NCBI RefSeq assembly: GCF_037042905.1
Contig: NW_026974148.1
Span: 62,001 to 126,000, forward strand
Length of the DNA: 64,000 nt
Reading direction: 5' to 3'
Source: Lytechinus pictus
Lineage: Eukaryota
Positions 24,000 to 64,000 of this stretch are shown piece after piece. Under the pieces are notes generated by a model. The model was not told the origin of the DNA, did not search any database, and saw only the letters and a list, made by a program, of their open reading frames with translations. Every line of letters starts with the position of its first letter. Positions within the stretch are counted from its first letter, which is position 1. The translations under genes were made by a program, and so were the position numbers.

Positions 24000-24194
24000 T
24001 AGAATCATGAAATGATTTGCCTGCGCCACAATGAGGCTGCGATGAATGCAAGGAATGCTCCCCAGGGAGTGGAAATTGTGCACTTTTCGTGCGAATTGAA
24101 AAGAATCCAATGACCGGGGTAATAATATGCTTAAACGCGCTTTGAGCCATTCTGGGAAAAGCGCTTTATAAAAATTGGCTGTTATTATTATTAT
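24000..24194 (+). mobile_element. 3' fragment of a SINE with an L2-like tail
   Basis: ATGCTCCCCAGGGAG...CGCGCTTTGAG...AAAGCGCTTTATAAAA followed by (TTA)n. Confidence 0.6.
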
Positions 24195-38162: not shown

Positions 38163-38466
38163 AGGGATGGTCCGGGCGCTGAAATATTAATTCTAAATAA
38201 ATAGAGTGAAATTCACAAAGCAAACTGCTAACAATTTCATCAAAATCGGATGACAAAATAACGAAGTTTATTAATATTTTGTGAAAACAGATATGTGCAC
38301 ATCGTCATGAATATTCATTTGGTGGGCTGATGATGTGTCGACATCCCCATTTTCCTTTTTTTATGTTAAATATGAAATTATGATTGTTTCATTTTTTTTC
38401 AATACATGTGTATAAATGTGTCTCCATTGTGATGAAGTTGCTGCATTTAATAACTAATGCGGTTAA
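38163..38466. mobile_element. Left half of a TTAA-flanked (Kolobok-type) MITE split by Kolobok copy 2
   Basis: TTAA then AGGGATGGTCC; internal TTTCATCAAAATCGGATGACAAA and GGTGGGCTGATGATG are mirrored at 62575-62850. Confidence 0.85.
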
Positions 38467-38656
38467 AGTTGATATAAGAAGACGATCACAAAAGTAGAGA
38501 TCTTTACATCATCAGAAAGCTTTCAACCTACTTAATATCAATAAGTTAATTTAAGACAATAAAACGAATTGAAAATATTAAAAATAAGCGATTAAAACTA
38601 CCTAAATATGGAAGTCATCGACGCCAATTCTCACGGCGTGAATTCGGTTCGTTTTG

Positions 38657-38673
38657 TGTGACGTCACGTCATG
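38657..38673. promoter_or_regulatory. Sub-terminal 17-bp motif containing the CRE-like palindrome TGACGTCA; inverted copy at 62365-62381
   Basis: TGTGACGTCACGTCATG and CATGACGTGACGTCACA lie 190 and 189 bp inside the two ends. Confidence 0.7.
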
Positions 38674-39388
38674 GCACTATTTGTTTTGACAAAGTGGTGG
38701 GGCCCTGTGTTGTGTGGAAAGTCTTCGTCGATATACTCCCGATACATTGTTGTTTGAGAGCTTATGATGTTATTACGAGTCAATTTGTTGTTTTCTTTCG
38801 ATTCATTTTGAATAGATAAACAACACAAAACATTATAATACCCAAAATATTATTTTTATATCATGTAATATACTTTTTTTTTTGGGGGGGAAGAGAAACC
38901 ACAGTGGTGCAAGGTGTGTGGGTATACTGTACTGTAATGAACAAACATACTTGCGAAACTTGGAGCAAATAGAACGAAGTGTGTTAAACTATCGTCGATA
39001 TTTCAAACTTAATTGTGACTATACACATAATCAACTATGTTTTTTAGCCTAAATCATCCCATCGAAGAAATACTTAATGTGAGGATATTAGTTAAAAGGG
39101 AAGTTTAAATCACGATTTCTCGACTGTCAAATGCAAGCCGACGACATTTGTTGTGATATATCTATCCGCGAGTGATGCGGCTATTGCACACAAGCGAGCG
39201 GAATCGACAAGGTTTGAGGCGCCTGGCCTGTGGGGCTGGTAAGTTGCACGCTCCGATCCGATAAAGTTATGCTCTAGTGATCCGGTTACTCCGTTGCTGC
39301 TTGGATTTTATACTCTCGGAAATTTGGTAATTTTGTTTTGATAGTCTGATTTTCTGCTTTATAGTGCTTGTCTGTGTAGAGATTAGTA

Positions 39389-42300
39389 ATGAAGGATGGT
39401 GATGGGCCGTCAGGTTTGGAGAAAGAAGAAAAGGGGAAGGCAAAAAAGAAGGATTCCGGAGGGTATCGATGCATGGTGATGCATTGTTCGTCGACTTATG
39501 CAACCACTACTGTACATACGATGCCAGGGCCGATGCCTCGACCTGGAGGTACCGGTAGGTTTAGCTCCTACCAAATGGCATGGATCAACTTTATCAAAAG
39601 ACACCGTGTGTTCGACCACTCATGGTTGAGACATATTCATGTGTGTAGCCTGCATTTTGATCAATCACAATATGATCAGACACAGCTCAAAATGTTTGAA
39701 CTGGGACTACGTAAATTGCCTCCGAAGCTGCTGGCAAATGCCATTCCCCATATCTACAATCCTACTGCTGACCCTGCCAGTGGCAGTGGACATGGACACC
39801 GTGATGGCACCCTTCTACATGTATCTCCTAAAGTGAGATCTAACTTTAGTACTTCAACATTGGCTAGCCCTTCATGTCCTTCCGCTAATGTTGTCCCGTC
39901 TGCCTCATCATCATTGGATGATCAGGACCCAGATAGATCATCTACATTTGTTGGCCTTGAGCATGAACATGATGGTGAAGACTACTCTCACTCTCAGACT
40001 CCAGTGAGCGCAGTGTCGGCACCGCTGGAGCCAGTGGCTGGAACTGCAACTTCGCCGACCTCTCAGGATGTTCGTAGGAAACGACAACGAACTTCATATA
40101 GCCGGAAGAAAGTGAGTAAATCATTTACAATTTAATAAGGCATGTTAGGAGTCTAATAAAAAATCAGTGTATTATTTTTTTTTGTCACGATAGGTCATTT
40201 GGGCAAAAATAATTTTCAGAGTAGAATCTAGAGTAGATCTACATCTAGACTTGCCTCTCATCATTACGGGTGTCTAATGTTAGTTCCAACAATCAAATAT
40301 GGATATTTTACATGTCTAGAGCCAAATCTAGACTCATTAAATGAAACATCAATATGAGGGGGGGGGGGGTGTAATGTAGGCCTTCATATATATCTATATA
40401 TAGAGTGTGAAGCTCAACACTCAGTCATATTGGTGTATCGGTATATGGAGATCGTGGCTGGATCGTGGGCGCACGCATGGTACGTTAGGTCGTGACCTCA
40501 GTAGTGCCGCGACGGACCATGCGTGCGACCACGCCATAAGTATAAAAGCCCCGATCTTCGAGTGATTCGAGAGAGTTTTCCAGAGTTTTCCAGTCAGTTG
40601 TTTGTTCCAGTCAGTCATCAGTCAGTAATAGTACAGTCAGTAATGAGCACGTCGAGTCAAAGGACATATCTAGTGGTAGCCATCGCCCGCAGATCGGTCA
40701 TCATCAGACGCGGATCCTAAGAAGGACTGGTTCAAGGTAAACCCTCGTCTCCACTATGGCGGGCAAGGTTACTACACAATGGCGCTACGTCTAAATTCGA
40801 ACCTGCGCTGGTTTAATAATTTTATTAAAGTGATTCAGCGCTTAAAATAGCTTTCCTAAACGTAGATTTAAGTATAAAACCTATATCACTTCCAAAAAAG
40901 AAAAGGAAAAGGAAGGAAATATCGTAGCTAGTTTATTAGATAATTTTGTAGTTTTACACATAGGTCATTTTGGTTGGGACCCGCCGCCACCGTAACGATA
41001 TATCTTTTTACACAACTATTCCAAAAAAGATTAGTGTTTTAGGGTTTTAATTGCCGTTTTGTGCACCGTTTTACCCTTACACAATTCCCTTAAACCAAAA
41101 TCTGGGTGTGTCGGGACGCCACGTAAGGCACGCGGAGTTTAACAATCCATGCATATTTTCTTTTGTCCGCCGCTCCCCGCGTCTATTGTTCGTTAGTTGA
41201 GAGCGCATGCCTTGCCCGATTGTTGCTTAATTGTGGCTGATTGCGGTAGATAAATCTACCCACCCCCATTTTCCCTGACCTTTTTTATTTAAATAATAGT
41301 TAGAATTTAATTGAATTAAACTTTGGAACTGTACTAAATAAATCAATAGCTGACTTTTGCTGTTGGTGATTTTATAGACTCTCGGTGAAGGATTATTTGC
41401 TTTACCTTGCTTGTATTTTTCTCTTAAACTGGCTGGCAATATAGGATTTTATTGCAAGCTGAATATATCTCGACGTAATAATAAATTCGCGCGCCTTCCA
41501 ACAGTTAATTGCTTCCTTTAGCTTTTACGATTGGAAATTAGTTCCCGAGCGAAAGCGAGTTTGTATTAGTACATTTAATTTTTGTTTTTGGCGCCGTATA
41601 CTGTTGCCAATCTGAAGAGTAGGGATTGGGATCTCGGATCTTGGTTATATTATGAAGGATTTGTTTTTGTGCTGCGGCGACCACAAATTAAATAACATTG
41701 CCGTGCAAAGACTTAAAATTCCGTAATATTATTTATCGTTTACATTCATCTGTATTCCCGTACGTGTTACTCTTCAGATTTCGGTAACTAATTCGCCCTG
41801 AATAAATCAATTTGTTACAGTTTGAAAACCTGGTTGAAAACGGAGTTGCCCTCTTGCAAAAAAATATAAGACGGGTTTCTCGCTCCGGATATAATTTCTT
41901 AACTTATTTTTCTTGCAAATCTAAAAGAAGAAAAATAATTATTTGACGAACGCTATTGATCGTGAAATACATATGCGTCGTCGTCTTCTGGATTGTTAGA
42001 GGACGGGATTTATTGTAAACTAATTTTACCACCCATGATCACATTCTTGTCAGCAATCCATTGCGGTATCGTTTTTAGTCAGTCCACTATTACAGGCTTA
42101 ACATTTATAAATCTCAACTATATTTGATAAATGGTTCGTGCGCGTATTTTTCTGGGAATTATAAAGCTTGTTAGTTGTTATTTTTTACATTCAGGCACTC
42201 ATAATTCTCATATACACGCGCCTCTCTAACATTTCATTTCGATTAAAAAAAAAAAGAAAAGGAGGGGAGTGGAGTGAGTCAGAATTATTTATCATCTCGA

Positions 42301-45300
42301 AAGTTCATTGACTTGTTCTAATTTAGGTTGTGCATTTGCCCCTGATTTTAAGGTTGGGCTTTTTCACTCTAGTTAGATTTGTTGAATCAGGATTTAGACT
42401 TGTCAAAGGCTGGGCTTCTTGTTTAATTCGCAGACTCTCGACCAAATATATTAAACTTTCCCCTAATTAAATTTGTTTAAACATATGTTAGTACATTAGT
42501 TAGGGATTTATTTAACATTAAGGATTGCTTCCCTCACTTTAAATTTATTAGAGAATCCAATGTTTTAAACGTCTTACATGTAGTTGCCTCCCTATAGGGA
42601 TACCTTTTTTATATTCGTGGGTTCCTGTTATTAGCAAGTTTGAAATAGTAATTAGCAAAAGCAACGTTATTGCCATAATTGAGTAATTGCAAGTTGGATT
42701 TGGGGGTTTGTCCACTGAATTATTAGGATATGATAGCGTATTTCTTACTTAATTTTCAGTTTGGACTTAGCTTAAATTCCAACTGCTAATTCCGGCGGCG
42801 GTATCGCAAGTCACTCCCTCAATCCAAGCGTCGCTTAAACTTGTCTATTTCATTACAGTTAATCCAGTTATTATCTTGTAAAAATAAGTCAGGATTCATT
42901 GAAGTGAATATATTGTTTTGTTTTCTGAATTTCAGGATCGTAACTGTAAATAAATTCTGAAGATTAAGAAATTGAAGTGCGTTACTGCTGCACCGTTTTA
43001 AGAATTTGAGCAGCAATTAGATTATTTATTCATTAAAAGTGTTTGTTATATACAGTCAAGTAGACTGAGTAATATTTACCATTCATTTGGCGAGAAGACG
43101 CCTGACACAGAGCCAAGTGGGCTTCTTGATTTTGATTTAGCTCATTTATTTATTGTTGTCTTTGACAAGCAAGAGCTCATTGTCTATATCTGTATAACTT
43201 GTAAATATATATATCAAAATTCGTACCCTTAATGTACGAGGGTGTACGGGCTTTCAATTAGTGGTTATTGTATGTTCATGCCTTCACTTTATATCTGTGC
43301 ATGAATAAATTATCAATTGTAACTTTGTTTACACATTGATATTTTGGGTTGTGCACTTGTACAAACGGGATTCTGAAATTATTCAGCATCCCGATTGCTA
43401 ATTATTACATTTAAAATAGTTGTCTTTGTAAATGTTTTCAGATTGTTATCGTATGTATGAGTACACATAGCGTCCAAATTGCGTGCGTTTGCCAAAATTT
43501 GATCGCATAAATTTTTGTAAGCCTATTTGAGCGATGCGCGTTGCATAAACTATAAGCATTTCAAGTACTTGTATAAAGTGTACTCAAATTCACAAGTTGG
43601 GCATACTATTTATAATTTGTATAGTATTACATTTTGTGACTTGTGAATTCCCTTTCGCGAATTGTATCTATTCAATACCATTCGTAAAACAATTTGCGAC
43701 TTGTATTTTTGCAATTTGCAGGTTGTTCATTTGGACTCCTCTTGTAACTTATAATATTTTGTAGAGTATAGTAAAGATAACATCGTAGTATAGGTATATC
43801 AGTAGTATTGTAGGTGTAATTGTAATCTGTACACATTATCTCCGAGAGACTTAAATTACCTTTTATATGTCCCTCCTATTATTCGTGTAATCATTTTGAA
43901 TGATAATTGAAATAATATGCCTGGGACACGGGACTATGAATATTATAGTTCAAGTTCCTCCAGCGATGAATCTTCCCATACAATTGACAGGTACCATCGC
44001 TGGTGGAGTGAACGTAAAGTCTCTCGTAGATACAATAATCGTTTGGATTCCTCTGAAAGAAGGAATCCTAGGTTGATGGAAGATCGTGATCATTCCCCTC
44101 AACGTTCAAGGCATTACCGCAATGCTCGTGGCAATGCGGTAAGTCGTGACGACAGGCAAGGGGAAGAAAATAATCATAACCGAAATAGGGATTATATTGA
44201 CAGATCCCATTCGCGCCGCAATCGGAGAGATCGCTCTATTTCCCCACGACACGATTATAGGGGAAATAATTGCTATTCTAGCGAGACTCCATTGCGAGGC
44301 GAATGCGATCGTCATCGCTATGACTCATCAAGAAGCGATCATCATCATAGGTCTCCCCTCCGTCGCAGTGGTAGGTCACGTCGTGAGTCCCCATCAAAAC
44401 ATCGGGATCATCATTATAACTATTATGATAATCAATACAATTCTCCACCACAAGGCCGAGGTGATTACCATGAGTATGATTACCGAAGACACGATCCATC
44501 TCCTCCACGTCGTGGGAGACGTTATGAATCCCCACACTACTATATGGATGATTATTATTATCACGAATGTAACGAATCTCCAATCCGACGTAGGGGAGAT
44601 GATTGCGAATCCCATTCACATAGATACCGAAATCGATCTCCATCACCTTATGAAGAAAGACGGAGGGGTGAAGGTTATAGGCGGGATCCCCCGAGAGAAT
44701 CATTTTATGATTCAAGGATGCGAGGATTGGATACTCGCTCCCCTTCACCTATTCGTCGTTCTCGATCACCATATGAAGGACGGAAGGATGACGGTTTTAG
44801 TCGGTATCCTCCTCGAGAATCATTTTATGAATCAAGTAGGTGGGATGCTCGCTCTCCTTCATCCGTTCGTTACTCAGAATGGAAGGGGAAAGACCACAGG
44901 CAGTCTTCCCCTCGAAGATCTTTTCGTGATCCTCATCGGCGGAATACTCCCTCTCCTTCACCCGTCCATTCTCGAGTAAGCACTGAGTACCCTAGCACAT
45001 CTTATTCCCGGGTAAGATCGAAAGATGAAGGAAACCATGGTTTACCCCCTCGATCCTCTCATGATCATCGCAGGCGTGAGTCTTGGTCCCCTTCATTTTC
45101 TCATCATTCAGACATCGATGGGTACCCAAGTGTTTCTTCATCTTCTGAGAAATGGACAATTGAAAATTATAAACGGCTAACCCCGCAATCATTCCATGAG
45201 CGTTCGAGGGATACTCGTTTATCTTCATCTGTCCATCTTCAAGATAATAATGATGGATACCAGAGTAATAGTTGCAGATTAGTGGCATCTTCTCCAACAT

Positions 45301-48300
45301 ATGAAAATTGTGAAACCATAGACAATAATATGCCCTCTGCCACTAATACTTTCTCACTGAAGCATATCAGGGTTACCCCAGATTCAGTAGAATATAAGGG
45401 ACCGAGTGGGTTTAACTTTCCCCCTCCCTTTAAGGCTCAAACCGAAGATACTGAGGAAACTGAAGTAGAAGTTACTACTCAGTCTCTTAAACATAGGTCA
45501 ATTGAACAACGAATTCATGTTTTGGAAGACAAGATGGACTTCGTGCTTAATCGCCTACAAATCCTTAATACACTGGAGTCCTCTGTCGAAGACCTAGCCA
45601 CTCAGATTTCCAAACTTGAGCAACTAACACGAACTTCACAAGAATCAAGGGGTTCCCTTAGAACTACTCCTGAGTCTATAGAGAAGCAGACCTCTCTCAG
45701 CCAACCTAATTCCTCCCCAGTCTTGACCAAATCCTTAGAGGAGAGTATTTCAGGTAATGGATGTGAGAGGCTTGATCCTAATGAACTCGGTGACCTATAT
45801 GCTAATAAATTAGTATCCATCGAAACTGAAGAATATCAGGGAAACGATCTGGGATCGGAGGAATGGGTCCGACCCCGATCCCAATATGTAAGGACCAACA
45901 CCCACTCTCTCCCCCTGTTTCAAGTTCACATCACATAACACCTGTCCAAAATAATAATTCTTCCCGTTCAGGTAGAAGTTTTGATCTATCATTTCTTTTG
46001 GTTGAGTGTGATGAGTCGAAACAGTTGGGCCAGCAGACAACTAGGGATGCACTGGGCAAGCAAAGTAGCCCCCCATCTCACGAGGAAGGGACTCCTCTGC
46101 ATGTCCATCCATTCTCCTATGGAGATAATCCGTCATTTATGTGCACCCCTTGGCTGCTTCCTCCTTGGCCTCCACCTTAAAAAAAAAGTGGAGATGAGAG
46201 GGAGAGGGTGAAGTAGAGTAAAGTAGACAGGGATTTTATTGCAATATTACACAATTATTGTATTATTACAATCATTACATATTAGAAATATGCATAATTA
46301 TATTGCCAGTTATTTTTGTATTTGTGCTCAAAGTTATATGAATTACATCATTTATATATTTGAAGTCTGTTAAATTCTGGCACATACACATTTCATGAAA
46401 CTTCCCTCTTGCCACAAATTCCAGAATACAGTTTGAGGGGAAGGTTCTTCTGATTAGAATATAAATTTATGCTACAGATTCATGACTCTATAATTAATGT
46501 AATTCATGGTAAACATTTCAAGATTCTTATATACACAGATACCTTTTTGTAATTAATATAATTCATAGGAAATATTTGAAATGTTGCAATGAGATCCCTA
46601 ACTCACTTTATAAGAAACGTGCAGTAAAATGCTGATTTTGTAAACAAGGACTTGCCGTTTGTTGTGGCAACAATATTGTCAGCAATGTAATCTGTATACT
46701 TGGGATTGGACTTTATTTTTATGTAATATACAATATGCACATTCATCTTTTAATCAAACAGTCATACTTTGACCTTCAATACAGTCAATGAAAATTGTTT
46801 AAACGATATTATGAACGATGTGCAGGTACCAGAAGTAGATTTTCCCACCTCTTTTAAGAATACTGGAGCTAAAAGTCTGCTGACAATATAAACATTCTAA
46901 TCATAAACCATGTTGCGAAACCAGTCTGACAGCACGTTTGATTCCAAGAGGTTTTGGGTCGTCTGCTCAAGTGCATCCTCTACTGGTTTCGATCTTTGTA
47001 ATACAAACCTGCTTGAGAAGAGAACAAGAAAAACAGGGTTTGATTTGCTGAATATGCATGTATATAAAAAGGTCCTTTCTCTGTTTTTACTATTGTCCTT
47101 TTTTGCGCAGGTTTACCCTAGGAGGTTCACTATTACGTCATATTGCCATTCTGGGTATTCTCAAACATATATTGCGATAAGTTGGAATCGTATTGGAGAG
47201 GTTTACATGAAATCATGTTAATCTGACCTATTTAAATAAAAACCTTCTAAACAAATATCAATACGACAGAATTAGAATAGACCCTAAACAGTGACTTTTG
47301 GAAAATATAATTTTCATTTATATGACCGTTGTTGAACCTCATTGGGTAATCCCAGGTAACATTGTAGGCTTTCCTATACTGTCCATCTGCAACTATTATC
47401 CACACGATTATGAATGCCCTCCGGTGAGATTATGGAATAAAAACTTGTACAAGGGCATATATATATACTTTACTCATATACTGACAGATACCTAATATGT
47501 TTTCGTCAGTCAATAGTTTGTTCAGGGGGACACATTATTTACATGCCAAATGGAATAGAGGTTTTAATGGATGACACCGTGTTTAGTAATGTAATATTTT
47601 ATACCTTTTTAAATTAAATTTGATGTGTGTTTTGTTGATCGGGGATCTTTATTGGCATCATTAATTTGTAACAGGCCAAGACAAAGGTGATGTTTAATTC
47701 CCCTTTTAATCTTTTAATCTCCCCTTGGTTTTTTATGGTTGGGAGGAATATGGAGATCGTGGCTGGATCGTGGGCGCACGCATGGTACGTTAGGTCGTGA
47801 CCTCAATAGTGCCGCGACGGACCATGCGTGCGACCACGCCATAAGTATAAAAGCCCCGATCTTCGAGTGATTCGAGAGAGTTTTCCAGAGTTTTCCAGTC
47901 AGTTGTTTGTTCCAGTCAGTCATCAGTCAGTAATAGTACAGTCAGTAATGAGCACGTCGAGTCAAAGGACATATCTAGTGGTAGCCATCGCCCGCAGATC
48001 GGTCATCATCAGCAGCTTCGATACTTCGAGGACATTACCAGACGCGGATCCTAAGAAGGACTGGTTCAAGGTAAACCCTCGTCTCCACTATGGCGGGCAA
48101 GGTTACTACAGGTAAATAGACTTCTGTTGAATGCTGGTGTTCTACTTCTGACAACTTGCTTTGGTCTAAAGGAAAAGCAAATTTATTCAATTTCGGTCAG
48201 GTCTGAACAGCAGTGCTTGGGTCTGATGGGTCGTCAATTTTTTTTTTATGCCATGCCGGTGACGATATTTCCCAATTGAATAATAGGGACGTTGTATACA

Positions 48301-51300
48301 CATTCCAAATTCATCTTGTTTATTAATTTTTTTCCAATAAGAAAAATCATAGGAGGCACAACATGCCCCCCCCACCCTTGCACCAACTGCAACTTTTGGA
48401 TGTCGTTACACATTCTACATGTAGCACACATGAAATTAATTTTCTTGATTTTGAGTAAGATGTAAAATTTACTACATGATCTCCAAGCAAAAGAGGGATC
48501 AGAGAGAGCATAACCAGTATATTCACAATGTTGACTTGATGACCTGAATAAGTGTTCCTTAACTTCCTTTAGTTTCTGATAACACATCAATGTATATGTA
48601 GATTTAATCTTAGCAGATTTATACGTAGGACTCCTCTCTCTCCTGTTCTCCAACTCTATACTCTTCAATGTACAGTATTTATAGGTTCTGTTTGTACTGC
48701 TTTTTACATTGTCATGACCGTATTTTGTTTTCCCCACCAAAATTATATTCATGAGATCATGATGACCATAGTTACTTCTCTACTTTATTTGGTAGGAGGT
48801 TGTCGAGATAACCGAGGAGTATACACGGAAAGATGATGAGGAACGAGCCTCGGCACGTACCAAAGATATTCTTGGGCGTAGTAAAGGTTTCCAGTGCTCG
48901 GTGAAGGTAGGTGAAATTGAACTATTGAACGATAATGCTATGACATGAAAGGACAAGTCCACTCCAACAAAAAGTTGATTTGAATAAAGGAGAAAATTCC
49001 AGCAAGCATGACACTGAAAATGTCATCAAAATCGAATGTAAAGTTTTCATGTATGACATTTTTAAAGAACTAATGTCACAAAATAGGCAAGTGAAGGAAC
49101 TGATGACATCACTCACTATTTCTTTTATATAAATATTCAAAATATTTTAATTTTCTCAATTGTCCTGTGAAACAAAGTTTTCTTTCTCCCTGAACGTATG
49201 GAATTGCCATTGTTTTAACATTTTATGGTTCAGTCAAGCTGGTCCTCATTGCCAAATCTGTTTTAAAAAGAAATGTTGTGTACTGTAATTCAAACAAAGA
49301 ACAAAAGAAATATTGAGGGGCATCATACATGTACATGTAGATTCTCTCATTTGCTTACATGTGACTAAATTGTGCATGCATATAACCATTTAAGTGAAAA
49401 ATAAGCAGAACTTTTAAAATGTACATGTAATTATTCAACCATCTTTTTTTTTTACATCTTAATATTGATGAAATTTTCAGCTTGTTTGTCTTGTTTGTTT
49501 TATTTATTCATTATTCTTGACAAATTGGATAATATATGAGGGGCTCAATGTCCCTCAACCCTGGGTGTATTGTTGTTGCACAGGTTATTTTGATGAAACT
49601 GGATTTGTTTTTTGAAAAAATTTCTTCACCTCCAACTTTTTAAAAATTGAAGTAAACCATACACTGTGTGTGTATGGGGGAGAGTGTATTTGTACAGTAT
49701 ATAATTGTCATGGGTGTTATCAAGGATAGTACTTTTTTTTCTATTTCATGCCATAGGCAGATTTTTTTAAAGCAAATTAAACAAGTTCAGTACATGACAC
49801 AAATGTTTTATGGATATTGGAGGGAAATGTACAAATTTTTTTCTGCTTGTTAATGGCCATCATGGATGTTTTGATCAGAAGCAGAATGTTCATAACAGTT
49901 TGAATGCATACAACATGTAGTCCTGGTAGTGTAGCAAAAGTAACTCAAGAACCATCACTTATCCAAAATACACATTTATTTCAGTAGCATTAACTAATTT
50001 ACATCCTTAGGTTCATGGAGTTGCAACTTTTTAGTTTCTATTTCAACTACCAAGTGATTCACATGTCTCTTTAGTCAAAATACTTGTGAGTAACCATTAA
50101 TAAACTAATCAATTTTCAGATGGTTCATCGGAGAGTTGGCATTCGGAAACAGAGGCGCACCTGCAAAGTGCAAGTAAAGCCCATCACTGTGTCAAAGGGT
50201 AAGTGGAGAAAATGATAAAAGCAAGTCTTTGTGATTTTGATAAATGGAGGATCATTTTGAATGCGTTCTAATTGAGCATAATACATGCACCAACAATGTT
50301 CATGATCATGGGAGGCTTGGGTGTTGACAACCTGAAATTTTCAGTAATAATAACGTCGACTTATCTCTAATATTCAATGTGAACAAATTTACTTGTATGT
50401 ATAATACAGGAATTTTTTACCATATTATGACCCCCCCCCTTTTTTTTTTTAAAGGAGGATACATAAAAATCTTCAATGTCAAGTTTATACACGTACATTC
50501 CGTATTCCTAAGTGATGGTACATGTAATTTCCATTTGACTGAGACAGAAATCTGTTGAATGATCCCGAGAGATGTGATAACAGTTTGAGCCACAAATTAT
50601 TTCTATGGTCTTCAGGATTTCTGTTTAGTTTTATTTCTTGTTTTTGTTTGCAGTTTTTCATTTAGATTTTTTTTTTTTAGTTACTGTTCTAATTTATTAT
50701 TTAGTCTTACAGTCCAAATAGGAAAGTAGCCTACATGTAGTGTAATAGGAAATATGTTGCTTTTACATTTTAATGTTCTTCATGATAGGAAAGCAAGTGA
50801 ATTTTCCGAAAGAGCGTGCAGCAGATCTTTGTGATGCAGTCACACAGACTGAAGGAATTTTTGTGTTGAAAGCAGCCAACCAACATGTTGAAAAAGAAGC
50901 AGTGGATGATGTCGAGGATGAAGCAACGGACGATGAACCAGCAGATGATGAACCAGTGGATGATGAGACCAAGGACCCCACATATATTCCAGGTGAAGAG
51001 ACCAACTCACCACGCAAAGAAGGGCAGTCAAGGTAAATTTTGTTTTATCCTATTAAATTCATTTGACATAAATATACAATACCCTATTCTTGACATTGTT
51101 CATTAATTTTAGTAAAATACAAAGCTGTTTGACATCACAAAAATACATAAATATAAAACCTGATCTAAATAATATATGGTGAATATGCAACTACCTGTGA
51201 TCAGTACATGCAAATTCAACTGTATTTGTCATTTTTCTTTTCAGTAATGCCTCGGAATACTTGTAATCCTGAATTCTTTCTTCTTATTTTCTATTTGTTG

Positions 51301-54300
51301 TTTGTCTTCTTTACAGATCTGAACCAAAGAGCCCTTTAATGCAGGAGAAGTTTATCGTGTTTGAGAGTAACCTGATGGAGCTCTTTGAAGTATGCATCTC
51401 TTGCCTTTCTAAGAATGTGCATGTGGAAAAAGTTTCTTCACAATCTTTAGGATCTGCACTGAAAGTTGTGACAACCTGCCTAGACTGTGGTCTTCGCCGG
51501 GAATGGCTCAGTCAGCCAAAGGTTGGTGACATCTACGCGGGCAACATGCTTTTGTCTGGTGCTATTCTGTTTGGAGGAAGTAGTCCCACTAAAGTGCTTC
51601 GTGTCTTGCGACACATGAATGTGAAGGCCATTACAGTGGAAACATTCATGAAACACCAGCGAGAGTACCTTCAGCCAGCAGTCATCAGAGTAGCCAAGAA
51701 GGAGCAGAGGAAGCTGATCAACGAAATTCCAGAAGGGGAGCCTCTCATCCTTGGTGGTGATGGGCAGTCTGATTCTCCGGGCCACTGTGCAAAGTATGGA
51801 TCGTACACCTTGATGGATCTCAAGAGGAACAAAATCTTGGATGTGCAATTGGTCCAGGTATGGCAAGAAATTTTCTTTTACAATTCTTTTACAATTCATA
51901 ATCAATATTTGGGTGAGTGCTATGGGAATCAAACAGATCAAATTAAACTGGCATGCATTGTTATATAGATATATGTATGCATAGCTTGAAAAAAAAGTTA
52001 TTTTTATAACTTTAAGCCACATTACTCTTTCAAAATGTATTTCTTCTACTCATAATTTTTCATTGCAAAGGGAATCAATTTGCCATTTTTTTTTCCTATC
52101 ACATTTCCTAAATTGGTATTTAAATTGTTGTTGCATCCTTATATTTTCTTACAGAGCAATGAAGTTCGCAATAGCAATGCGATGGAGTTGGAAGGTCTGG
52201 CAAGGGGACTCACTAGTCTGAAGGAGAAGGGGGTCAATATACGTATGCTGGTGACTGATAGGCACCTCCAAGTGGCTAAATGGCTCCGAGAGAATTATCC
52301 TGACATCAATCATAGATATGATGTGTGGCATATTGCGAAAGGTATGCAGGAAGTACTTTCATTTCTCATAATTATCCTTTGTTTTTATGTTTTGTTATGT
52401 ATTATGTTGAATTGAGAACAATGTCCGGTCCATTATGTTGAATTAAGAATAATTCCAGGTCCTTCCTCCATTTTCCCCTTTATTTTCAGAACATGATGGG
52501 GGGGGGGGGGCTGGGTCACCATATGCCCATCAATGAAAAATTGTATCCTCTGTAAGTAAGGTTTTCTTTCATGTTTGCTCTGATAGTAACAGTCCCTTGT
52601 GTAGAGATCATTTCTTATTGACATGCATAGATATATTGAATAAGAAACTTGGTTGAATTATCATCTTAGGTCTGAAGAAAAAGATCATCGCAGTGTCCAA
52701 GCTGAAAGATTGTGAAGTTGTTGGCAGATGGAAGCGGTCCATCAACAACCATGTTTATTGGTGCGCCTCATCAACCCCAGATGGTGATGGAGAGGTCATG
52801 GTGGCCAAGTTCAAGTCTATCCTAAATCACATGCGGAACATACATGAAAACCACAGTGACGTCTATCCTGCATGCTCTCATGGAGAGAATCATGGACAAA
52901 GAGAGTGGATGAGGCAAGGTTAGTATTGCTAGGACAGTTTTTTTGCATGTTAAGTAACATATTTAGTGAAGATTAGTGGATGCAAAACAATGATAACTGC
53001 TTGATTGCTAAAACAAACGATTACTTGCCAGTAAAATTTGCAGGGGCGATTTTAACAATTTAATGATGCCCTACCAATTTTGATAATTCAGCTTTGATGT
53101 GCAAGTAGTCAGGTTGTCACAATTTTTAGGCAGGAGAATGTGTCTTAACTTTGGTCTCCCTAAATTCAGTGTGAAAGGAATAATGTATGAACTTAAACTT
53201 GCCTACATGTACATCCAATGCTGATTTATGGTACATATGGTGTGCAGAGTGAGATTTGAATTGACTGTGATAAGAGAACATGCATGTATCATGACCTGAG
53301 AAGCGAGTCAATATCAAATGTCAATTTATTTAGCTATGCGAATTCACATAAAAAACAAGATACTGTAGATTGTGTCTTAATCGTGTCATGACGAAAAAGG
53401 GTGATGGCACAACAAATGATGACTGTGATGGGTATGCAGACTTTTATAGATATACACCATGTGTAAGTTATTTATCTAATCCTTTTCATTTTGATAATTA
53501 CAAAATAGTACATACTACATTGGATCAAAGAAGTACAGGAAGCAATGAGAATATTTTACATTTAAGTTTAACTCCTGTTTTATTTTTTAAATTCACAGGT
53601 ACGAAACCGTTTGAAAAGTTGTCTGAGGAACTATCAAAAACCAGACTGTTGAATGACATGAAGAAAATGTCTCCTGTTGACCAGACCAGTTCAGTCGAGG
53701 CCTTTCATAGTGTGATGCTCTATTGGTGTCCTAAGATGCTGGCCTACTCATATGCCGGGATGAAGTGCAGGTAAAAAAAATTGCAAGTCTATGTAGTTGA
53801 TTTTTGGGTTGAATGAGTGTGGAAATACGTGCTTGACCGAAGCGGTGATTGAAAGTAAATGGCCCTCAACCTCATTACAAAGATTTATATATTATTCTTC
53901 ATCATATTCTTGAAGAAAAGCTTTGTCATAGTTTTAATAAAATAGATTAAAGTTTTTACATATTAGTCATGATATGTCTACATGTACTGTACATGTATAA
54001 AGCCCAATAGTGATATCGTGGTAGAGAACATCTTGTACTAAAATCGATTACAGTTATTATTTTGTTTTTCTTTGTACTCTGGTTATTTGTAGATTACATC
54101 TTGCCGCCTTGCACTGGAATGAGAATGCTGGTCGAAGTCATGCAACTAAGGCAGATGGGACACCTATGTACCGTATCAATTACCCCAAAGCCAAAGAAGG
54201 CGGCCACACAGTTTCCAAAGCGTTGACAGCTTGCACATTCAGTGAGTATATTTCAACCTCCCTTCCCCTGTAAAATAATTGTTAGAAAATAGGGGGTCTT

Positions 54301-54895
54301 ATGTTAATGTGTATGTACTTATGAATTTTGTCGACTGTACTCTAGGTGATTGATATTTTGTAAGGTAATAAAATCAATAAATTATGAAGAAGTATCCTAA
54401 AGACAGTTCACATAGAGATCTGCATTGTTAGAAATACTTGCCATGCGTGTGTTTATTCATTTGCCTCCTGAATGATATGCCAGTGCATGTCATGGTGGCA
54501 ATGTAATGCGATTATAAGATTTTTTTTTTTTTTTTATTAAGCAGATTTTCACAAGGTTTTGTATTTTCTGTATTTGTTTCATTTTCACATTGCATATAAT
54601 AGAAGAGAAGCAAGTGCTTCTTGCTTATTTTTCTTTATTTACATGTAATTTTGATTTTTTTTTTTCTTGTGACTTTTAGATACTAAATACATTTGAAATT
54701 GATATTTTTTTTTTCATAGATTATGTGAGAACACTCATGGAAGAGACAATGCAACTAGTGTCTGGAAAACAAAAGATCCGGTCTACCATCCCAGAACTGG
54801 AGGGAAAGCCACCATTGTGCTCAGGAGTTGATCGTCCAAGTAAAGCAGAGGCCATTGATCAGTTACAGGTACATCGTCGATTTTCAAAGGAGTAG
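39389..54895 (+). CDS. Kolobok THAP-DDE transposase, 876 aa, open. Exons 39389-40111, 48796-48906, 50120-50198, 50789-51032, 51317-51857, 52155-52341, 52670-52918, 53599-53770, 54093-54241, 54720-54895.
   Basis: THAP (RCMVMHC..W..HVCSLHF..AIP); GGDGQSDSPGHCAKY, LVTDRH, YDVWHIAK, TSSVEAFHS, LAALHWNEN; all nine introns GT-AG with matching phases; 2631 nt total with no internal stop. Confidence 0.9.
40444..40776 (+). repeat. 5' LTR (333 bp)
   Basis: TATGGAG...TTACTACA; TATAAAAG at 40541 followed by repeated TCAGT initiator-like motifs. Confidence 0.93.
43917..45938 (+). CDS. 673-aa intronless Arg/Ser/His/Tyr-rich repetitive protein with a C-terminal coiled coil; only long ORF of the LTR element
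   Basis: 2022-nt open frame in AT-rich DNA; many SPxRR/RSPSP motifs; heptad stretch IEQRIHVLEDKMDFVLNRLQILNTLESSVEDLATQISKLEQL. Confidence 0.8.
   Translation: MPGTRDYEYYSSSSSSDESSHTIDRYHRWWSERKVSRRYNNRLDSSERRNPRLMEDRDHSPQRSRHYRNARGNAVSRDDRQGEENNHNRNRDYIDRSHSRRNRRDRSISPRHDYRGNNCYSSETPLRGECDRHRYDSSRSDHHHRSPLRRSGRSRRESPSKHRDHHYNYYDNQYNSPPQGRGDYHEYDYRRHDPSPPRRGRRYESPHYYMDDYYYHECNESPIRRRGDDCESHSHRYRNRSPSPYEERRRGEGYRRDPPRESFYDSRMRGLDTRSPSPIRRSRSPYEGRKDDGFSRYPPRESFYESSRWDARSPSSVRYSEWKGKDHRQSSPRRSFRDPHRRNTPSPSPVHSRVSTEYPSTSYSRVRSKDEGNHGLPPRSSHDHRRRESWSPSFSHHSDIDGYPSVSSSSEKWTIENYKRLTPQSFHERSRDTRLSSSVHLQDNNDGYQSNSCRLVASSPTYENCETIDNNMPSATNTFSLKHIRVTPDSVEYKGPSGFNFPPPFKAQTEDTEETEVEVTTQSLKHRSIEQRIHVLEDKMDFVLNRLQILNTLESSVEDLATQISKLEQLTRTSQESRGSLRTTPESIEKQTSLSQPNSSPVLTKSLEESISGNGCERLDPNELGDLYANKLVSIETEEYQGNDLGSEEWVRPRSQYVRTNTHSLPLFQVHIT
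45839..45896 (+). promoter_or_regulatory. Putative programmed -1 ribosomal frameshift signal
   Basis: Heptamer G_GGA_AAC (45839-45845) in the correct phase; stem TGGGATCGG (45850-45858) / CCGATCCCA (45875-45883); loop GGTCC (45866-45870) can pair with GGACC (45892-45896). Confidence 0.68.
45845..46180 (+). CDS. -1 frame extension of 111 aa (RSGIGGMGPTPIP...WLLPPWPPP), giving a predicted 754-aa transframe product
   Basis: This frame is open from the slippery site to TAA at 46178-46180 and is exactly -1 relative to the 673-aa ORF. Confidence 0.55.
   Translation, partial: RSGIGGMGPTPIPICKDQHPLSPPVSSSHHITPVQNNNSSRSGRSFDLSFLLVECDESKQLGQQTTRDALGKQSSPPSHEEGTPLHVHPFSYGDNPSFMCTPWLLPPWPPP
47749..48110 (+). 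repeat. 3' LTR (362 bp)
   Basis: Matches the 5' LTR except one G/A substitution and 29 extra bases (CAGCTTCGATACTTCGAGGACATTACCAG). Confidence 0.93.
48948..49500. mobile_element. Degenerate Kolobok-type MITE in transposase intron 2; related remnants ~25480-25740 and ~29330-29615
   Basis: Starts AAAGGACAAGTCCAC; the reverse complement GTGGACTTGGCTTT occurs near 29602; shares the CATCAAAATCG motif with the 38163 MITE. Confidence 0.55.
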
Positions 54896-57800: not shown

Positions 57801-58119
57801 TTATTGAATAGTAGGGATAGGCAGTTACACAATGAGGGAGCACAAACCCTGATGGTAGATGTCCATCAATGAGAATTCAAACATTAAATTTATTTTATAT
57901 TATACACCTCATGATTTTTTTAATTATGAAAAAGGGAAAGTAAGTACTTGCTACTGAAACTGAATATTCCTTGTGAAAGGAAAATGAGTACGAAAGAAAA
58001 CTTAATTTTCATATTGAATGTGCAGTCCAATTCAGTGTGAAAGCTAGAAATGGGGTTCTATGCTTCCCAAGAAAGTCTTGAACATTGTGATCCCTTTCAT
58101 AAAGCACATATAAATATGT

Positions 58120-58314
58120 AGGGCAATTCCATAAAATGATAAACCTTTTTGAAAATCCGACCTAATTTTTCTAGTCTTCACTTGATAAATTGGCCAAGTC
58201 ATGGTCATTTGACAGCATTTCAGACTGTCAAAAGAACCAAAAATCAGAGACAGAAAATTTCAGGAAGGTCCCAAATATAGGGGTTCGGACGCACACATTT
58301 TATAGAATTGCCCT
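58120..58314. mobile_element. MITE with ~18-bp TIRs
   Basis: AGGGCAATTCCATAAAAT / ATTTTATAGAATTGCCCT. Confidence 0.7.
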
Positions 58315-59708
58315 GTAATTTACATCAACAATCATTTAAGCATCATTCATCAAAAGAAAAAAAATTCAGACAGGAAATTTCAAAATTCCTAATAAGTCTA
58401 TTTGTTTCTTCAGAATTATCATCTACATGTACATTACAAAAGGCAAACTAACTCATCTTCATTACTTGATTTCCAAGTAGAAGGGCCTTGGAAAAAGCAA
58501 GAAAATACATATCTACATGTAATTCCCAAATGACTTTGACTAGACGCAAATAAAAAAAAAACACAATCAAAATAAAGCAAAATATACATGGACCATAGTT
58601 CAATATTACAATCACAGAAGGCATATACCAAGATAGTTCGATCCAATACATTTCAAATTATTTTGAATTCAAAATACAAGTACAGTTGTAAAAGATATAT
58701 GGCCTTTTAAACAATTAAATGACTTCATTTATCAATATCTGCAACAGGAAGAAAAGACATTACATTATTTACCAGGCACCCAAACAGCTAAGCAATAACA
58801 AACTGATGAAGATGACGAAGTTAGAATACATTGTGCAAGTCCATAAACCCATTAACTAATGTTTTTGTCTAATGAAACTTCTTTAAAAACAATTTTACTC
58901 TGAATTACACTCTGAGATGGGAATAAATGTATGTTCTCATGGTATGAAGATGCAACACAAAAACATTGCTTTCCATACAGGAATTAAACATATATAACTC
59001 AATATTTTGAAACAGATAATGGACTAAAAATCAATATCTGCACAGCTACATGTACGTCAATACAGAATGACCATTCGACAAGTAACTTCACCTGTACAAT
59101 GTATCCTTATTATATTTACAATTGTTACTATATATAATTCTAAAAAATAATTATTAAAAACCATCAAATGCAGGATTTTTTCACCTGCAAACCATTTACA
59201 TTTTGATTTCCAATAGATGAGACATGTAAATATTTTCCTATAAAGATAAATCATACATGTAGGCCTAATGCTAATGATAATAATCAAAACAAGGAAAATA
59301 ATGAACTGTACTTGATAATATGACATATCAAATAATGTAACTCCTAAGGTCCGAACATGTCTTGAAAACTCTGAATTCCAAATCCACTTAAACAAATAAC
59401 AAATTTAGTAAGTAGAAACCAGTTCTACATGCAGAATGAACAATGCATCTATACAGTCAATTTAACTCATTATATTATACAGTATAGAGAGACATGCACA
59501 CTGATGTAAGTAACATCAAAATCAGAAGATAACTACATGTGAGTGAAGGTACATATATAGGGTTCATGTAAGTACACTTTCAAACATTTAAAATTTAATG
59601 GATGGCATCTTCAAATACTGATCAATGTACAGAGCTTTGCATTTTGAGTGCTGAAACGTAGCAAAAAACTGCCAAAACAAAATTATGATATATATATACA
59701 TAAGTCAT

Positions 59709-61967
59709 TTATCTTCTCAATACTCGCAGAACTGTCCCCCTGTAAATTCCAGCACCATCAGGATAGGCTCGCATGATTTTTGAGTGTATGCAGGCAGGTA
59801 GTTGCACCCTTATGTCTTTGCCGAGAAAACCCCAACACCAGCGGACAACTTTTCTATAAGCCACATATCTGTATTTCCTGCAAAATAAAAATACAGAAGA
59901 TTAATGTAAAGAGAGACTTAAATTAAAATACTAAAACCAGAAATACATGTATGCAATGGTTTGAAATTCCCTTCAATTTTTTGTTTGCCGCAAGAATGAT
60001 ATAAACCCCAAGTTTTTATTACTGTAACACCATCAGAAAAAAAACATGTACATGTAAGAGACATTGTCAATTTACCATGCTTGGTCAGGTCCATACATGT
60101 AAATAAAAATACATGAAGAGCATGACACTACATGTACCTGATAAAGTGCCTGCTTAAAAAAGTCTTCCTCCTATTTTAAAAACTTTCTTTCAAATTGAAA
60201 AAAAAAAATATCCAGCTTAGACACAAAAATAATTACACTAATTTCCTGGTTAATATGTCAAACATTGCATAACCCCAAATAATTTAATTTTACCCTGCCT
60301 CTTTGAAAACTAATGCACAGAAAATATATTAATCAAGAACAAAATTTTTCTGATTACTGTTGAAGGCTATACATTATCTAGTAAGGAGGTAAAGTCCATG
60401 TCAATGACCATGATACTTACTCATTGTTTCGGTTACCAAAGGCCCTGGCTGCTCGCCTCCACCTGTCCGTGTACTCCATCCATCCAATATATAAAGATAT
60501 TGGGTTCAGGATGGCTGACTCAAACGCCTCTGTTGTAGTGAGACAGTCTACGCCTAAAGCGTCCGTTTCAAATGAAACTTCAGGAATCTCCCTGCAACAT
60601 GTGCAGTCACCTGCAGAGAATGAAGGTTCCACCCTGCAGTGGCCACCACATAGACACCTAAAAGTAAAAAAAGAAGAAACATCAGTATTAATCATCTTTT
60701 TTTTACTCCTCTTGCCTGCGGATTTTAATGCAATGTAAGTCTATGAGATATTTTGGGGAAAAGATGCAAATTATGTGCAGTGGGCACTGGCACATCCAGA
60801 GGGAGGGGGGGCACATCTGACTCGTGCCCCCTCCCTTTGAAAGCGAGTATTTTTTTTTTCATTTTGTTTGTCAATTTTTTTGGGGGAAATGTGCCCCCCC
60901 TTGAAAAATCCTGGCAGTGGGTACGTGTAGATGAAGATACGCTGTTTGTGGACAACACCTCATCTTGATCAAATTTTAACACAAAACTAGTGCTGTAGTG
61001 GTGCTCTCCATTCCATGGGGGGGGGGGGTCAATTGTATATTTGCAAGAGACTTGACATATTAGAGCTAATAATAATATAAAGCAGACCTCATGCGATACT
61101 TATTACATCATGTTTGTACCTCCTAAATGTATTCAATGCATACACTAGTCAATTTTCTACCATCCTTCATGTAAGATAAATTTTAAAGAAAAACGTGGCA
61201 ATAAAATTGTTCGCAGGTGCTGAATAGTGTTGGGCTACTACCGGTACTGAAGTCTCACTCAGCTCAGCTTCGGACTTGTTGGGTGAATGATTTTTTTTTA
61301 ATTCCATAAAAGCGTTTGCTCGGTGATATAACCTTATCGTTTTTATTTTCTTTTACATTCAAATTAAAATTACTGGTTTAATGACAGAAAAAATTGTAGC
61401 CACTAACGAATAAGATCTAATGATATTTCAATCCCGACTGAACGAACTGAGCTAGCTGAGCCTGAGAGACACTGACACTGTCAGTCAAATTGACAAGTGA
61501 CAGTGACTAAGTCACAAAGGCAAGCAACTAAGAAACGTGGTATTATTAGTAAATGAATGGAGTCTCTAAGCTAAGTCAGATAATTAGACAATAACTAACC
61601 AATCATTATTCATTAACCGATGAGGATCGACATCCCGGGGAGCATCTCCGTCGTTAAAAAGGCCATCATCATCGTCATCTTGTCTCGGTGGTGGTTCATG
61701 GAGATACGGTTGCGGAACATCGGGTGCTCCCTCGGCTCCTAGGCGGGCCGTTCCCCTGGCGCTGGCCTCGGTGGCTGCGGCTGGCATAGGAGCGTTATAG
61801 TCCTCGTCAACGACTCCCTCTTCTCCGATTTCTCCATCGTCTTCTCCTTCCTCACTCGTTGACGCGTCCTCCCAACTACCGTCGTCATCGTAGCTCTCTT
61901 CATCACTTTCCTCTTCACCTTCCTCTTGAAAGTCCTCAAAATCCATAAAAAGATCGTTCTGTTCCAT
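59709..61967 (-). CDS. KolX-type accessory protein with a P2X7-ballast/nanor-like domain, 257 aa, open. Exons 61967-61600, 60657-60421, 59877-59709.
   Basis: Acidic N-terminus, PQPYLHEP, WCLCGGHC..CTCCREI..CLT, YRYVAYRKVVRWCWGFLGKDIRVQLPACIHSKIMRAYP; two phase-2 GT-AG introns; 774 nt total. Confidence 0.88.
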
Positions 61968-62574
61968 TCTAGCGCGTGATCCCGTATAAAGCAGAAAGCG
62001 AGAGTCGAAACAAATGTAAACAAACACCGCACGTGTACGTAGAGCTTGGGGGAAAGCAATCGACCGGATCTACTTTCAAAGTCAGGCCGGTCTTCGGCAC
62101 ACGAACGTTCAAAGATTTCAACACAAAAAAAAATAAAAATGAGTGAAGAAAATGTGACATAAAAGAATGTTTCCGCAAATATTTCGAAATCGTAAGCCCG
62201 ATAATTATTATTTATTATATCAGCGATATATATAAGGCAAAGGAATATGTACACAACCATTATTTAGCTGAGTTTTTAACTTTTGAAAAAAAAAGGAAAA
62301 CATTTTCTGGAGCTCTGTGTATGATTTTATGTGGAACATCCGGGGAACATAATGAGAGGGCAGGCATGACGTGACGTCACATAGACCGAGGTGGAAATCG
62401 TGAGAAGTTTCCTGGCTCGTTAGAGATGCTATTTTGGAGGCATTTTAGTGGAGGATACCAAGGTGCCAGACGACTTTTATGGTATTATATGTGGATAAAC
62501 AGATTATATATGTAATATGCTTTCCTTACATACCATATTCCAGGATATTTATTTCCTTCTTATGTCAACTTTAA

Positions 62575-62850
62575 TCAGTTGTCATTCCAATTGTTTAAGT
62601 TCTTGGTAGAAATATTTTGAATAAACCTAATTTCATATAATGTACAAAAGAACATGGGATATGACATCATCAGCCCACCTAATGAATATTCATGAGACAT
62701 GCCTAAATAGAACTGTTTCACGGGAATATTGCAAATCCTTAAAATTTAACTTAACTTCGTTATTTGTCATCCGATTTTGATCAAATTTTAAACATTTTGC
62801 TTTGTGAATTTTACTGAGATATATGAATATCTCTAGCCTTGACCTTCCCT
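62575..62850. mobile_element. Right half of the MITE begun at 38163
   Basis: CATCATCAGCCCACC, TTTGTCATCCGATTTTGATCAAA; ends GACCTTCCCT followed by TCAA (mutated TTAA). Confidence 0.85.
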
Positions 62851-63689
62851 TCAATTATTTTCTTGTATCGTTAGAAAGAGATGGATGAAGTAGAAGAATA
62901 CGTTCATCGCAACCAATTAAGCTCTAAGGGTGTTAGGTTTGTCCTGCATATTTTAACACGTACCCTTTTACATGTAGTCACTTTTTTTTTCTTATCCTGT
63001 TTTTATGAAAAATAAGTGGCGAACAAACAAAACAAATGATAATTGAAATTTAAAAGAGCGCATGAAAGAGAAATAAACCTGCCCATTTGGGGGTCAATAA
63101 TTTTTCGTATTTTTCAGTTCGCGCTTTGCTCCTAGTTTTGATCTAGTACGTATAGTACCCTTTCTCGTAGAAATAGAAGCTATCAAACTTAAAACCTCTG
63201 AGTCTCAGTAGGCATAACCACCCCCCTCGCTGATATAGACCTACACAATGGGACTTAGCGTTGGGGGCCACGGACCCCCAAAAAAGTCTCACAACAAAGA
63301 AAGGAGAAAATAGAGAAAAGGAAAAAAACGAGGTTAAATATAACTTTCAAATAGGGCCTATGTCAAAATCTAGCTATCACAAAATTAAATTTTCATTAAA
63401 GATTGTACTTTTTAAAATGAATGGTGCCCTTTTAAGCCATATGGTCTCCTAAAAATATAAGACTCAATACGCTACTGACCTCTCCCAAAACTGAAGAAAA
63501 AAGGTAAATCCCTCACATGAAATAACACTTTTTTTAGTATGTGGTACAAACAGGGCTTCCGTGCAAGTACTGAAGGAAACTACATTTTTCATGTACCACA
63601 GAAAATACACCATAACGTCTGTGATACAGTTTCAGTCATATTTCTGGGGTGGCTGCATGAGAAGTACCGTAGGAAATTTTGAAAGTACA

Positions 63690-64000
63690 GCACTGGGGTT
63701 GCCATAGAATTTTAGAAGTGCCTATAATGAGTCATGCAGGAAATTTCTAAATGTTCATGTACCACAGAAGTATCACAGGGTTTCCATAGAAGTGCCTTTA
63801 TTAGGATCGAGTACTGCAGGAAATTTCCAAATATTCATGTACCACAGAAGTATCACAGGGTTTCCATAGAAGTGCCTTTAATAGGAGTACTGCAGGAAAT
63901 AAAAAAAAATATCATATACCACAGAAGTATCGCAGGGTTGCAATAAAAGTACTGCAGGATATTTTAGAATTTTCATGTACAACAGAAGTACGACATAACT
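63690..64000. repeat. Degenerate ~80-bp tandem repeat running off the window
   Basis: CATGTACCACAGAAGTATCACAGGGTTTCCATAGAAGTGCCTTTA repeated. Confidence 0.8.

Follow-up and report, generated by a model that had tools for sequence, protein, structure and literature searches.

The reference for the Kolobok DNA transposons is reportedly Kapitonov and Jurka 2007, with Kolobok-1_XT as the type element. The element described here, from the sea urchin Lytechinus pictus, occupies positions 38467–62570 of a 64,000-nucleotide stretch of contig NW_026974148.1 (positions 62,001–126,000 of the forward strand, RefSeq assembly GCF_037042905.1) that contains no N and is referred to, as a whole, as the window. 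We consider it, with a probability of about 0.9, to be a full-length Kolobok transposon of autonomous type that belongs to the KolX-bearing lineage, Kol0. The published definition of Kolobok/Kol0 comprises a TTAA target-site duplication (TSD), 5'-RR/YY-3' termini, a C/DxxH signature, a zinc finger between this signature and the catalytic Glu that is absent only in Kolobok1, and a KolX protein with a ballast fold (PMC9587614). Kolobok is related to MuDR, P, and hAT (PMC9587614), and Kol0 elements have been listed from vertebrates, annelids, cnidarians, and sponges, with echinoderms not named (Kojima and Bao 2022, PMC9587614).

The L. pictus element shares with the described Kol0 elements the TTAA duplication, short terminal inverted repeats (TIRs) of the 5'-RR...YY-3' type, a THAP-bearing DDE transposase with C/DxxH and a downstream zinc finger, and KolX. 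It differs in belonging to an echinoid family with ends that begin AGTT, in its great length (24.1 kb, or about 16.4 kb without a nested insertion), and in having nine introns in the transposase gene and two in KolX. It is an ordinary member of this lineage, to which it is assigned by its TSD, its termini, the DDE, DxxH, and zinc finger motifs, and KolX. The XKol proteins of Xenopus have the same set of motifs, namely DDE, THAP (C2CH with an AVPTIF-like box, which reads NAIPHIY here), and H2CH (PMC6004289). Many Xenopus Kolobok copies are reported to be domesticated and conserved between species (PMC6004289), whereas those of L. pictus have TIRs and TSDs at their boundaries and occupy sites that are not homologous, and the closest protein found in the congener Lytechinus variegatus is only 71% identical.

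Ends and Target Site of the Element

The element is 24,104 bp long and is bounded by TTAA at 38463–38466 and 62571–62574. Its 15-bp TIRs, AGTTGATATAAGAAG at the left end (38467–38481, plus strand) and AGTTGACATAAGAAG, the reverse complement of 62556–62570, at the right end (minus strand), match at 14 of 15 positions, and the termini are AG...CT, with RR at the 5' and YY at the 3' end. When all TTAA-RR...YY-TTAA pairs in the window were scanned, none except that of this element reached 15 or more matching positions of 20, and no second complete TTAA-flanked TIR pair was found in the window. An 18-nucleotide motif, TGTGACGTCACGTCATG, which includes a palindrome, TGACGTCA, similar to the cyclic AMP response element, is present in inverted orientation about 190 bp from each tip (38656–38673 and 62365–62382). 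It is part of a pair of subterminal inverted repeats, of which the left (38649–38673) is upstream of the transposase gene and the right (62365–62389) is upstream of KolX, so that each precedes an inward-facing gene. The pair may represent a promoter element or a transposase-binding site; a THAP-binding site was considered and dropped because the fit, judged by eye, is poor.

A second copy on chromosome CM073228.1 (loci L004 and L005) aligns to window positions 38463–62574 and to nothing beyond them. Both copies have the arrangement flank-TTAA-AGTTGATATAAG... / ...CTTATGTCAACT-TTAA-flank, with identical TIRs, the same AG...CT termini, and unrelated flanks; the two sequences diverge directly upstream of the left TTAA. 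The copies do not appear to be parts of a large segmental duplication, which looks excluded since the flanks do not align.

The sequence surrounding the window copy is itself repetitive. Outside the transposon, positions 38160–38462 and 62575–62870 are the left and right halves of a foldback repeat, the arms of which are at 38160–38400 and 62615–62870. An intact paralogue of this repeat at L005 951–1565 provides the empty site: it reads ...AATAACTAATGTAC-TTAA-TCAGTTGTCA..., in which TTAA occurs only once at the place where the window carries the element, and was compared with a hypothetical pre-insertion window sequence constructed in a script. The outer inverted repeats at 38205–38336 and 62664–62815 were considered as the true ends of the element and rejected as arms of the dispersed foldback repeat, because the intact paralogue carries one TTAA at the point of insertion. 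In the foldback family, arms of about 240 bp enclose a loop of about 110 bp; the family is represented at 25486–25741, 38160–38400, 48733–49038, and 62615–62870 of the window and at L005 951–1565; arm-like pieces also surround the second exon of the transposase gene.

The sea urchin Diadema antillarum has a related Kolobok (locus L006, JBFRCO010000499.1), about 24.7 kb long, with a transposase gene followed by a reversed KolX that has a P2RX7_C domain. Upstream of its transposase, TTAA is followed by AGTTCACATAAGAAG, an end of the type AGTT.A.ATAAGAAG; the right partner is degenerate. Since this relative has TTAA with a similar left end and the same two-gene layout, the AGTT-type end is characteristic of the echinoid Kolobok clade to which both belong. 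The Diadema element is located in an intron of a gene on the opposite strand that encodes a host protein of 931 residues.

Divergence of the Two Copies

Outside the exons the window and sister copies differ by 82 substitutions in 12,956 aligned bases (0.63%). In the coding sequence of the transposase there are six substitutions, four nonsynonymous and two synonymous, and in that of KolX four, all nonsynonymous, together with one in-frame 3-bp indel, giving eight nonsynonymous and two synonymous differences for the two genes. Because the copies differ by only about 0.6%, the family has moved very recently. The predominance of nonsynonymous differences suggests that it is probably the youth of the copies that accounts for their intact reading frames. 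Older RefSeq versions contain further near-identical variants (P0353, P0354, P0358, and P0359), of which P0353, with 878 residues and 10 differences from the window protein, and P0359 are intact; the sequence variants of the family thus number more than two and are either extra loci or alleles. No further copies and no derivatives of the miniature inverted-repeat type (MITEs) were found in the DNA examined.

All exons are intact in the sister copy, the transposase of which is split by RefSeq into LOC129282890 and LOC135153563. In this copy, about 20 kb of inserted sequence interrupts the intron preceding exon 8, and there is a 0.57-kb insertion downstream. The larger insertion (L004 27015–36365 plus L005 1–10055, with about 0.9 kb of the middle not covered) has the ends GGCGGGACGTCAA... 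/ ...TTGACGCCTCGCC, is flanked by TAA, and looks like a PIF/Harbinger element. Isoforms X2 and X3 of LOC129282890 (L004 10001–26365) fuse 145–241 upstream host residues, which have no Pfam domain, to Kolobok exons 2–7; the THAP exon is skipped, and the isoforms end by read-through into the intron after exon 7. They could represent a chimeric transcript of host and transposase or an artefact of the gene model.

The Transposase Gene and Its Product

Ten plus-strand exons with canonical GT-AG boundaries translate exactly to the RefSeq protein XP_054773944.2 (P0238, LOC129282034, 876 residues). For this comparison the exons were concatenated in scripts and the translations were matched to the stored RefSeq proteins, which were also used for all full-length searches. 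Both genes of the element are already present in RefSeq, as LOC129282034 and LOC129282410, annotated only as "uncharacterized"; the RefSeq gene coordinates are on scaffold JAZDCF010000028.1 (GCA_037042905.1), which is 100% identical to window positions 29389–64000. The splicing of both genes, as modelled, rests on the canonical sites and on identity to the RefSeq models.

Exon 1 (39389–40111, residues 1–241) contains the start codon and a THAP zinc finger with the conserved residues Cys28, Cys33, Cys86, and His89 (Pfam THAP, 32.8 bits as compared with a cut-off of 23.9). Exon 2 (48796–48906) is surrounded by repeat-like sequence; the possibility that it is an exonised repeat was rejected, as its peptide is conserved in Diadema and in other echinoid homologues. 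Exon 3 (50120–50198) and exon 4 (50789–51032), which encodes an acidic linker, are defined by exact exon mapping, as is exon 10 (54720–54895, stop codon included). Exon 5 (51317–51857), located by mapping and alignment, encodes a CCCC zinc finger (Cys412, Cys415, Cys440, and Cys443) and the sequence GGDGQSDSPGH, which contains Asp534 and Gln536. Asp601, in the sequence TDRH, and the signature Asp622-x-x-His625 are in exon 6 (52155–52341), which gives weak, sub-cut-off Pfam matches to MULE and Mutator. Alignment places an H2CH zinc finger (His682, His687, Cys697, and His699) in exon 7 (52670–52918). The candidate catalytic Glu745, in the sequence VEAFH, is encoded by exon 8 (53599–53770) and is in a helix of the predicted RNase H-like core, and exon 9 (54093–54241) includes the copy-specific Ala812, which is aligned with Val in most homologues.

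Asp534, Asp601, and Glu745, the candidate DDE triad, are invariant in an alignment of 30 sequences from sponge to fish. The same 30 sequences share the four Cys residues of the CCCC finger, Asp622 and His625 (in the form D-V-W-H), and the four ligands of the H2CH finger. The DxxH signature is thus between the second Asp and the Glu, and the H2CH finger is between DxxH and the Glu, as in the Kolobok definition. Exon 5 alone retrieved 3474 homologues from a representative protein library in a search free of a length filter, which also revealed the L. pictus proteins, whereas a length-filtered search with a single exon gave only fragments of 64% identity or less. The homologues found for the transposase are unnamed proteins described as "uncharacterized" or "Mutator-like/THAP". 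In addition, two low-coverage eukaryotic contigs of the ENA analysis ERZ26222911 (L001 and L002) contain exon-sized open reading frames (ORFs) that are 60–64% identical to exon 5.

In an AlphaFold model built on the 30-sequence alignment, residues 390–876 are predicted with confidence (predicted local distance difference test score, pLDDT, of about 90). The model indicates that the core of the transposase is an RNase H-like DDE fold with an α-helical insertion that carries DxxH and the H2CH finger. The best Foldseek matches are ISCth4 of the IS256 family (PDB 6xg8; E = 8.8e-7, template modelling (TM) score of about 0.46–0.49 relative to the target), followed by the P element transposase (6p5a) and Hermes, in keeping with the relationship of Kolobok to MuDR, P, and hAT described in the literature. 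In ISCth4 and the P element transposase, as in the modelled protein, an α-helical domain is inserted into an RNase H-like DDE core, and the P element transposase also has a THAP DNA-binding domain; the two differ from the modelled protein in having only 11–13% sequence identity to it and in their target duplications. In a profile search of the PDB the transposase gave a match through the THAP domain only, and no solved structure was found by sequence for the catalytic core.

KolX

Three minus-strand exons at the other end of the element translate exactly to XP_054774282.2 (P0357, LOC129282410, 257 residues). Exon 1 (61600–61967), assigned by exact mapping, contains the start codon and encodes an acidic N terminus of low complexity. 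Exon 2 (60421–60657) encodes the Cys-rich part of the ballast domain, and exon 3 (59709–59877), which includes the stop codon, its C-terminal part; together they align to residues 468–590 of P2X7. The full-length protein matches Pfam P2RX7_C with 40.9 bits (cut-off 23.5), and its residues 110–249 align to P2X7 468–590 (phmmer E = 7.9e-5). Exon 3 alone matches P2RX7_C with 25.8 bits, and exon 2 alone has no Pfam and no PDB match. The second protein expected of a Kol0 element, a KolX with the ballast (P2X7 C-terminal) fold, is therefore present by both Pfam and phmmer matches.

KolX would thus consist of an acidic tail and a zinc-binding domain homologous, on sequence grounds, to the cytoplasmic ballast of P2X7 (PDB 6u9v and 8tr5). 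In contrast to P2X7, it is free-standing, transposon-encoded, and preceded by the acidic N-terminal tail, and has no channel part. The ballast fold binds zinc and, in P2X7, also guanine nucleotides; because of these properties we guess that KolX may be an accessory or regulatory factor.

The main structural features had been described before in a sequence-only reading of the window, which noted both TIRs and both TTAA duplications, an uninterrupted transposase of 10 exons and 876 residues with catalytic candidates in GDG, TDR, and VEA, and an uninterrupted KolX of three exons. These descriptions agree with the 14/15 TIR match and the RefSeq proteins, the catalytic candidates are the invariant Asp534, Asp601, and Glu745, and the sister copy and empty site that it suggested seeking were both found. 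The AGG start that it reported for other TTAA elements in the window was not confirmed, no second complete TTAA-flanked pair having been found there.

Competence of the Window Copy

The window copy has acquired a nested element in intron 1 of the transposase gene (40444–48110, plus strand, 7,667 bp) that is absent from the sister copy. This is young and resembles a retrotransposon with long terminal repeats (LTRs): it has direct repeats at 40444–40776 (333 bp) and 47749–48110 (362 bp) that are about 99% identical, a tRNA-complementary stretch, TGGCGC..., similar to a primer-binding site, after the 5' LTR, and a purine tract, similar to a polypurine tract, before the 3' LTR. It is flanked by GGTA as TSD (40440–40443 and 48111–48114), and the sister copy has the corresponding empty site with a single GGTA. 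Its single long ORF (43917–45938) encodes a Ser/Arg-rich protein of 673 residues with a coiled-coil-like C-terminal part and no significant Pfam match; no reverse transcriptase, integrase, or long pol-like ORF was found on either strand. The nested element is possibly a non-autonomous one, with a captured or unknown gene as its cargo.

A second peculiarity is Gln536, two residues after Asp534. Codon 536 is CAG in the window copy (position 51766) and CGG, for Arg, in the sister; Arg is also found in P0353, in all 29 of the aligned homologues, and in 312 of the 318 that are stored (98%). Gln is found at this position in one other stored homologue. Trp79, Leu80, and Ala812 are likewise private to the window copy as compared with two other variants, so that there are four private changes in total.

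Several of these observations weigh against the view that the element, as it stands in the window, is a working one. With the nested insertion, intron 1 measures 8.7 kb in place of about 1 kb, and the four private changes include that at position 536. The coding differences between the copies are mostly nonsynonymous, and nothing indicates that selection has kept either gene functional since they split. The comparison comprises the two genomic copies inspected, the RefSeq transposase and KolX proteins are computational models, and no experimentally shown Kolobok transposition was found in the literature searched.

The alternative that best survives is that the window copy is young but already dead, with ends that can be mobilised in trans and a transposase of its own that is inactive or not properly expressed. 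We regard this as an even chance. The substitution of a nearly universal Arg beside the first catalytic Asp, the four private replacements, the private 7.7-kb insertion, and the neutral-looking pattern of substitution between the copies all favour it, but none of the 13 exons or of the splice sites is damaged, introns frequently tolerate insertions, the role of Arg536 in Kolobok is a presumed one, and Gln recurs at this position in another homologue. That the transposase of the window copy itself is competent is somewhat less likely than not; its ends are probably still good substrates. The sequence-only reading had called the element possibly active and a good template for reconstituting transposition. 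The first description suits the family, which has moved recently, whereas doubt is the safer position for this copy, with its large insertion and R536Q; the second stands as a lead for Kolobok assays, only alongside natural variants with Arg536, because the window copy carries the 7.7-kb insertion and its private changes.

Alternative Assignments

The assignment to Kolobok has been weighed against the possibility that the element is a Mutator-like element (MULE) or a piggyBac. In Pfam the transposase matches Mutator (PF20700) and MULE weakly, its best structural match, ISCth4, is of the IS256 family, and piggyBac, too, typically targets TTAA and transposes by cut-and-paste with TTAA duplication. 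The scores are, however, below the cut-offs (17–21 bits as compared with 27.6 for MULE and 20 bits as compared with 26.5 for Mutator), and the TSD is the 4-bp TTAA, not one of 8–10 bp. The ends of piggyBac are typically CCC...GGG, whereas those of this element are AG...CT, and piggyBac differs from it in having an unrelated transposase fold family, terminal sequence, and gene content; Pfam detected only THAP and the sub-threshold MULE and Mutator matches in the protein, and no piggyBac transposase domain. THAP, DxxH, the H2CH finger, and KolX fit the published definition of Kolobok/Kol0, and a MULE or piggyBac identity is very unlikely.

It is equally hard to maintain that the sister copy is an assembly artefact, such as a haplotig or duplicated scaffold. 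In favour of this, the 1.25-Mb scaffold that holds the window belongs to the same assembly and is unplaced, but the similarity ends exactly at both TTAA sequences, with unrelated flanks beyond them, and the large private insertions differ (7.7 kb in the window; about 20 kb and 0.57 kb in the sister).

That the transposase and KolX are a domesticated pair of host genes and not a mobile element, as their intact reading frames and their annotation as ordinary RefSeq genes might suggest, can be dismissed in view of the intact TIRs and TSDs, the second copy with the same ends at an unrelated locus, the paralogous empty site, the mostly nonsynonymous differences between the copies, and the low identity of the nearest proteins found in other urchins (LOC121423188 of L. 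variegatus, 71%, which in itself makes domestication unlikely; D. antillarum, 63%). The earlier reading had named a single fixed copy conserved across species as the outcome that would point to domestication; what is found is at least two copies at unrelated loci, about 0.6% apart.

Other Elements in the Window

The Kolobok transposon is in a transposon-rich stretch. A second, different, KolX-bearing Kolobok is present in the opposite orientation at about 21598–29052. It comprises a transposase piece (28672–28977, minus strand) with the sequence GDGRNDSPGH...VTDAH that is 38–50% identical to the main transposase, and a KolX-like piece (21598–21750, plus strand); its ends were not found in the window. 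Other transposon-type ORFs are at 9973–11900 (plus strand), with SAP and YqaJ-like exonuclease domains (62.9 bits), at 14135–14644 (minus strand), with a fragment of the PIF/Harbinger domain DDE_Tnp_4 (108 bits), and at 15849–16493 (minus strand), with a separate THAP domain (37 bits). Three tandem copies of a 394-bp unit with 99.6% identity are at 32660–33841, and an array of repeats of about 80 bp is at the right edge of the window (63650–64000). Scanning the entire window against Rfam and for tRNAs gave no matches.

Proposed Mechanism and Significance

In the mechanism that we propose, the Kolobok element inserted by cut-and-paste into the central loop of a copy of the dispersed foldback repeat, at a TTAA that was thereby duplicated. 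It carries two convergent, intron-containing genes that start near its opposite ends, the transposase on the plus strand and KolX on the minus strand. The transposase is predicted to comprise, in order, the N-terminal THAP domain, a disordered acidic linker, the CCCC zinc finger, and the RNase H-like DDE core. By analogy with other THAP proteins, the THAP finger would bind sites near the element ends and, by analogy with DDE cut-and-paste transposases, the core (Asp534, Asp601, and Glu745) would cut and join the DNA; staggered joining at TTAA would yield the duplication. The window copy has since gained the LTR-retroelement-like insertion and the R536Q substitution.

Kolobok is a eukaryotic cut-and-paste superfamily without biochemistry. 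The L. pictus family provides a practical start for assays: several near-identical copies retain every exon, the ends are defined, an empty site is proven, and both genes are present. It also offers a way to ask what role is played by KolX, a free-standing relative of the P2X7 ballast domain. In vivo tests are also conceivable because L. pictus is a laboratory sea urchin. The family might be currently active in this species, with insertions still polymorphic, and a natural variant, with or without KolX, might mobilise the ends in a heterologous assay. We consider this unlikely on present evidence; if true, a Kolobok system with experimental activity would be available for the first time, as would an approach to the part played in transposition by KolX, from which the tail of P2X7 has been proposed to descend.

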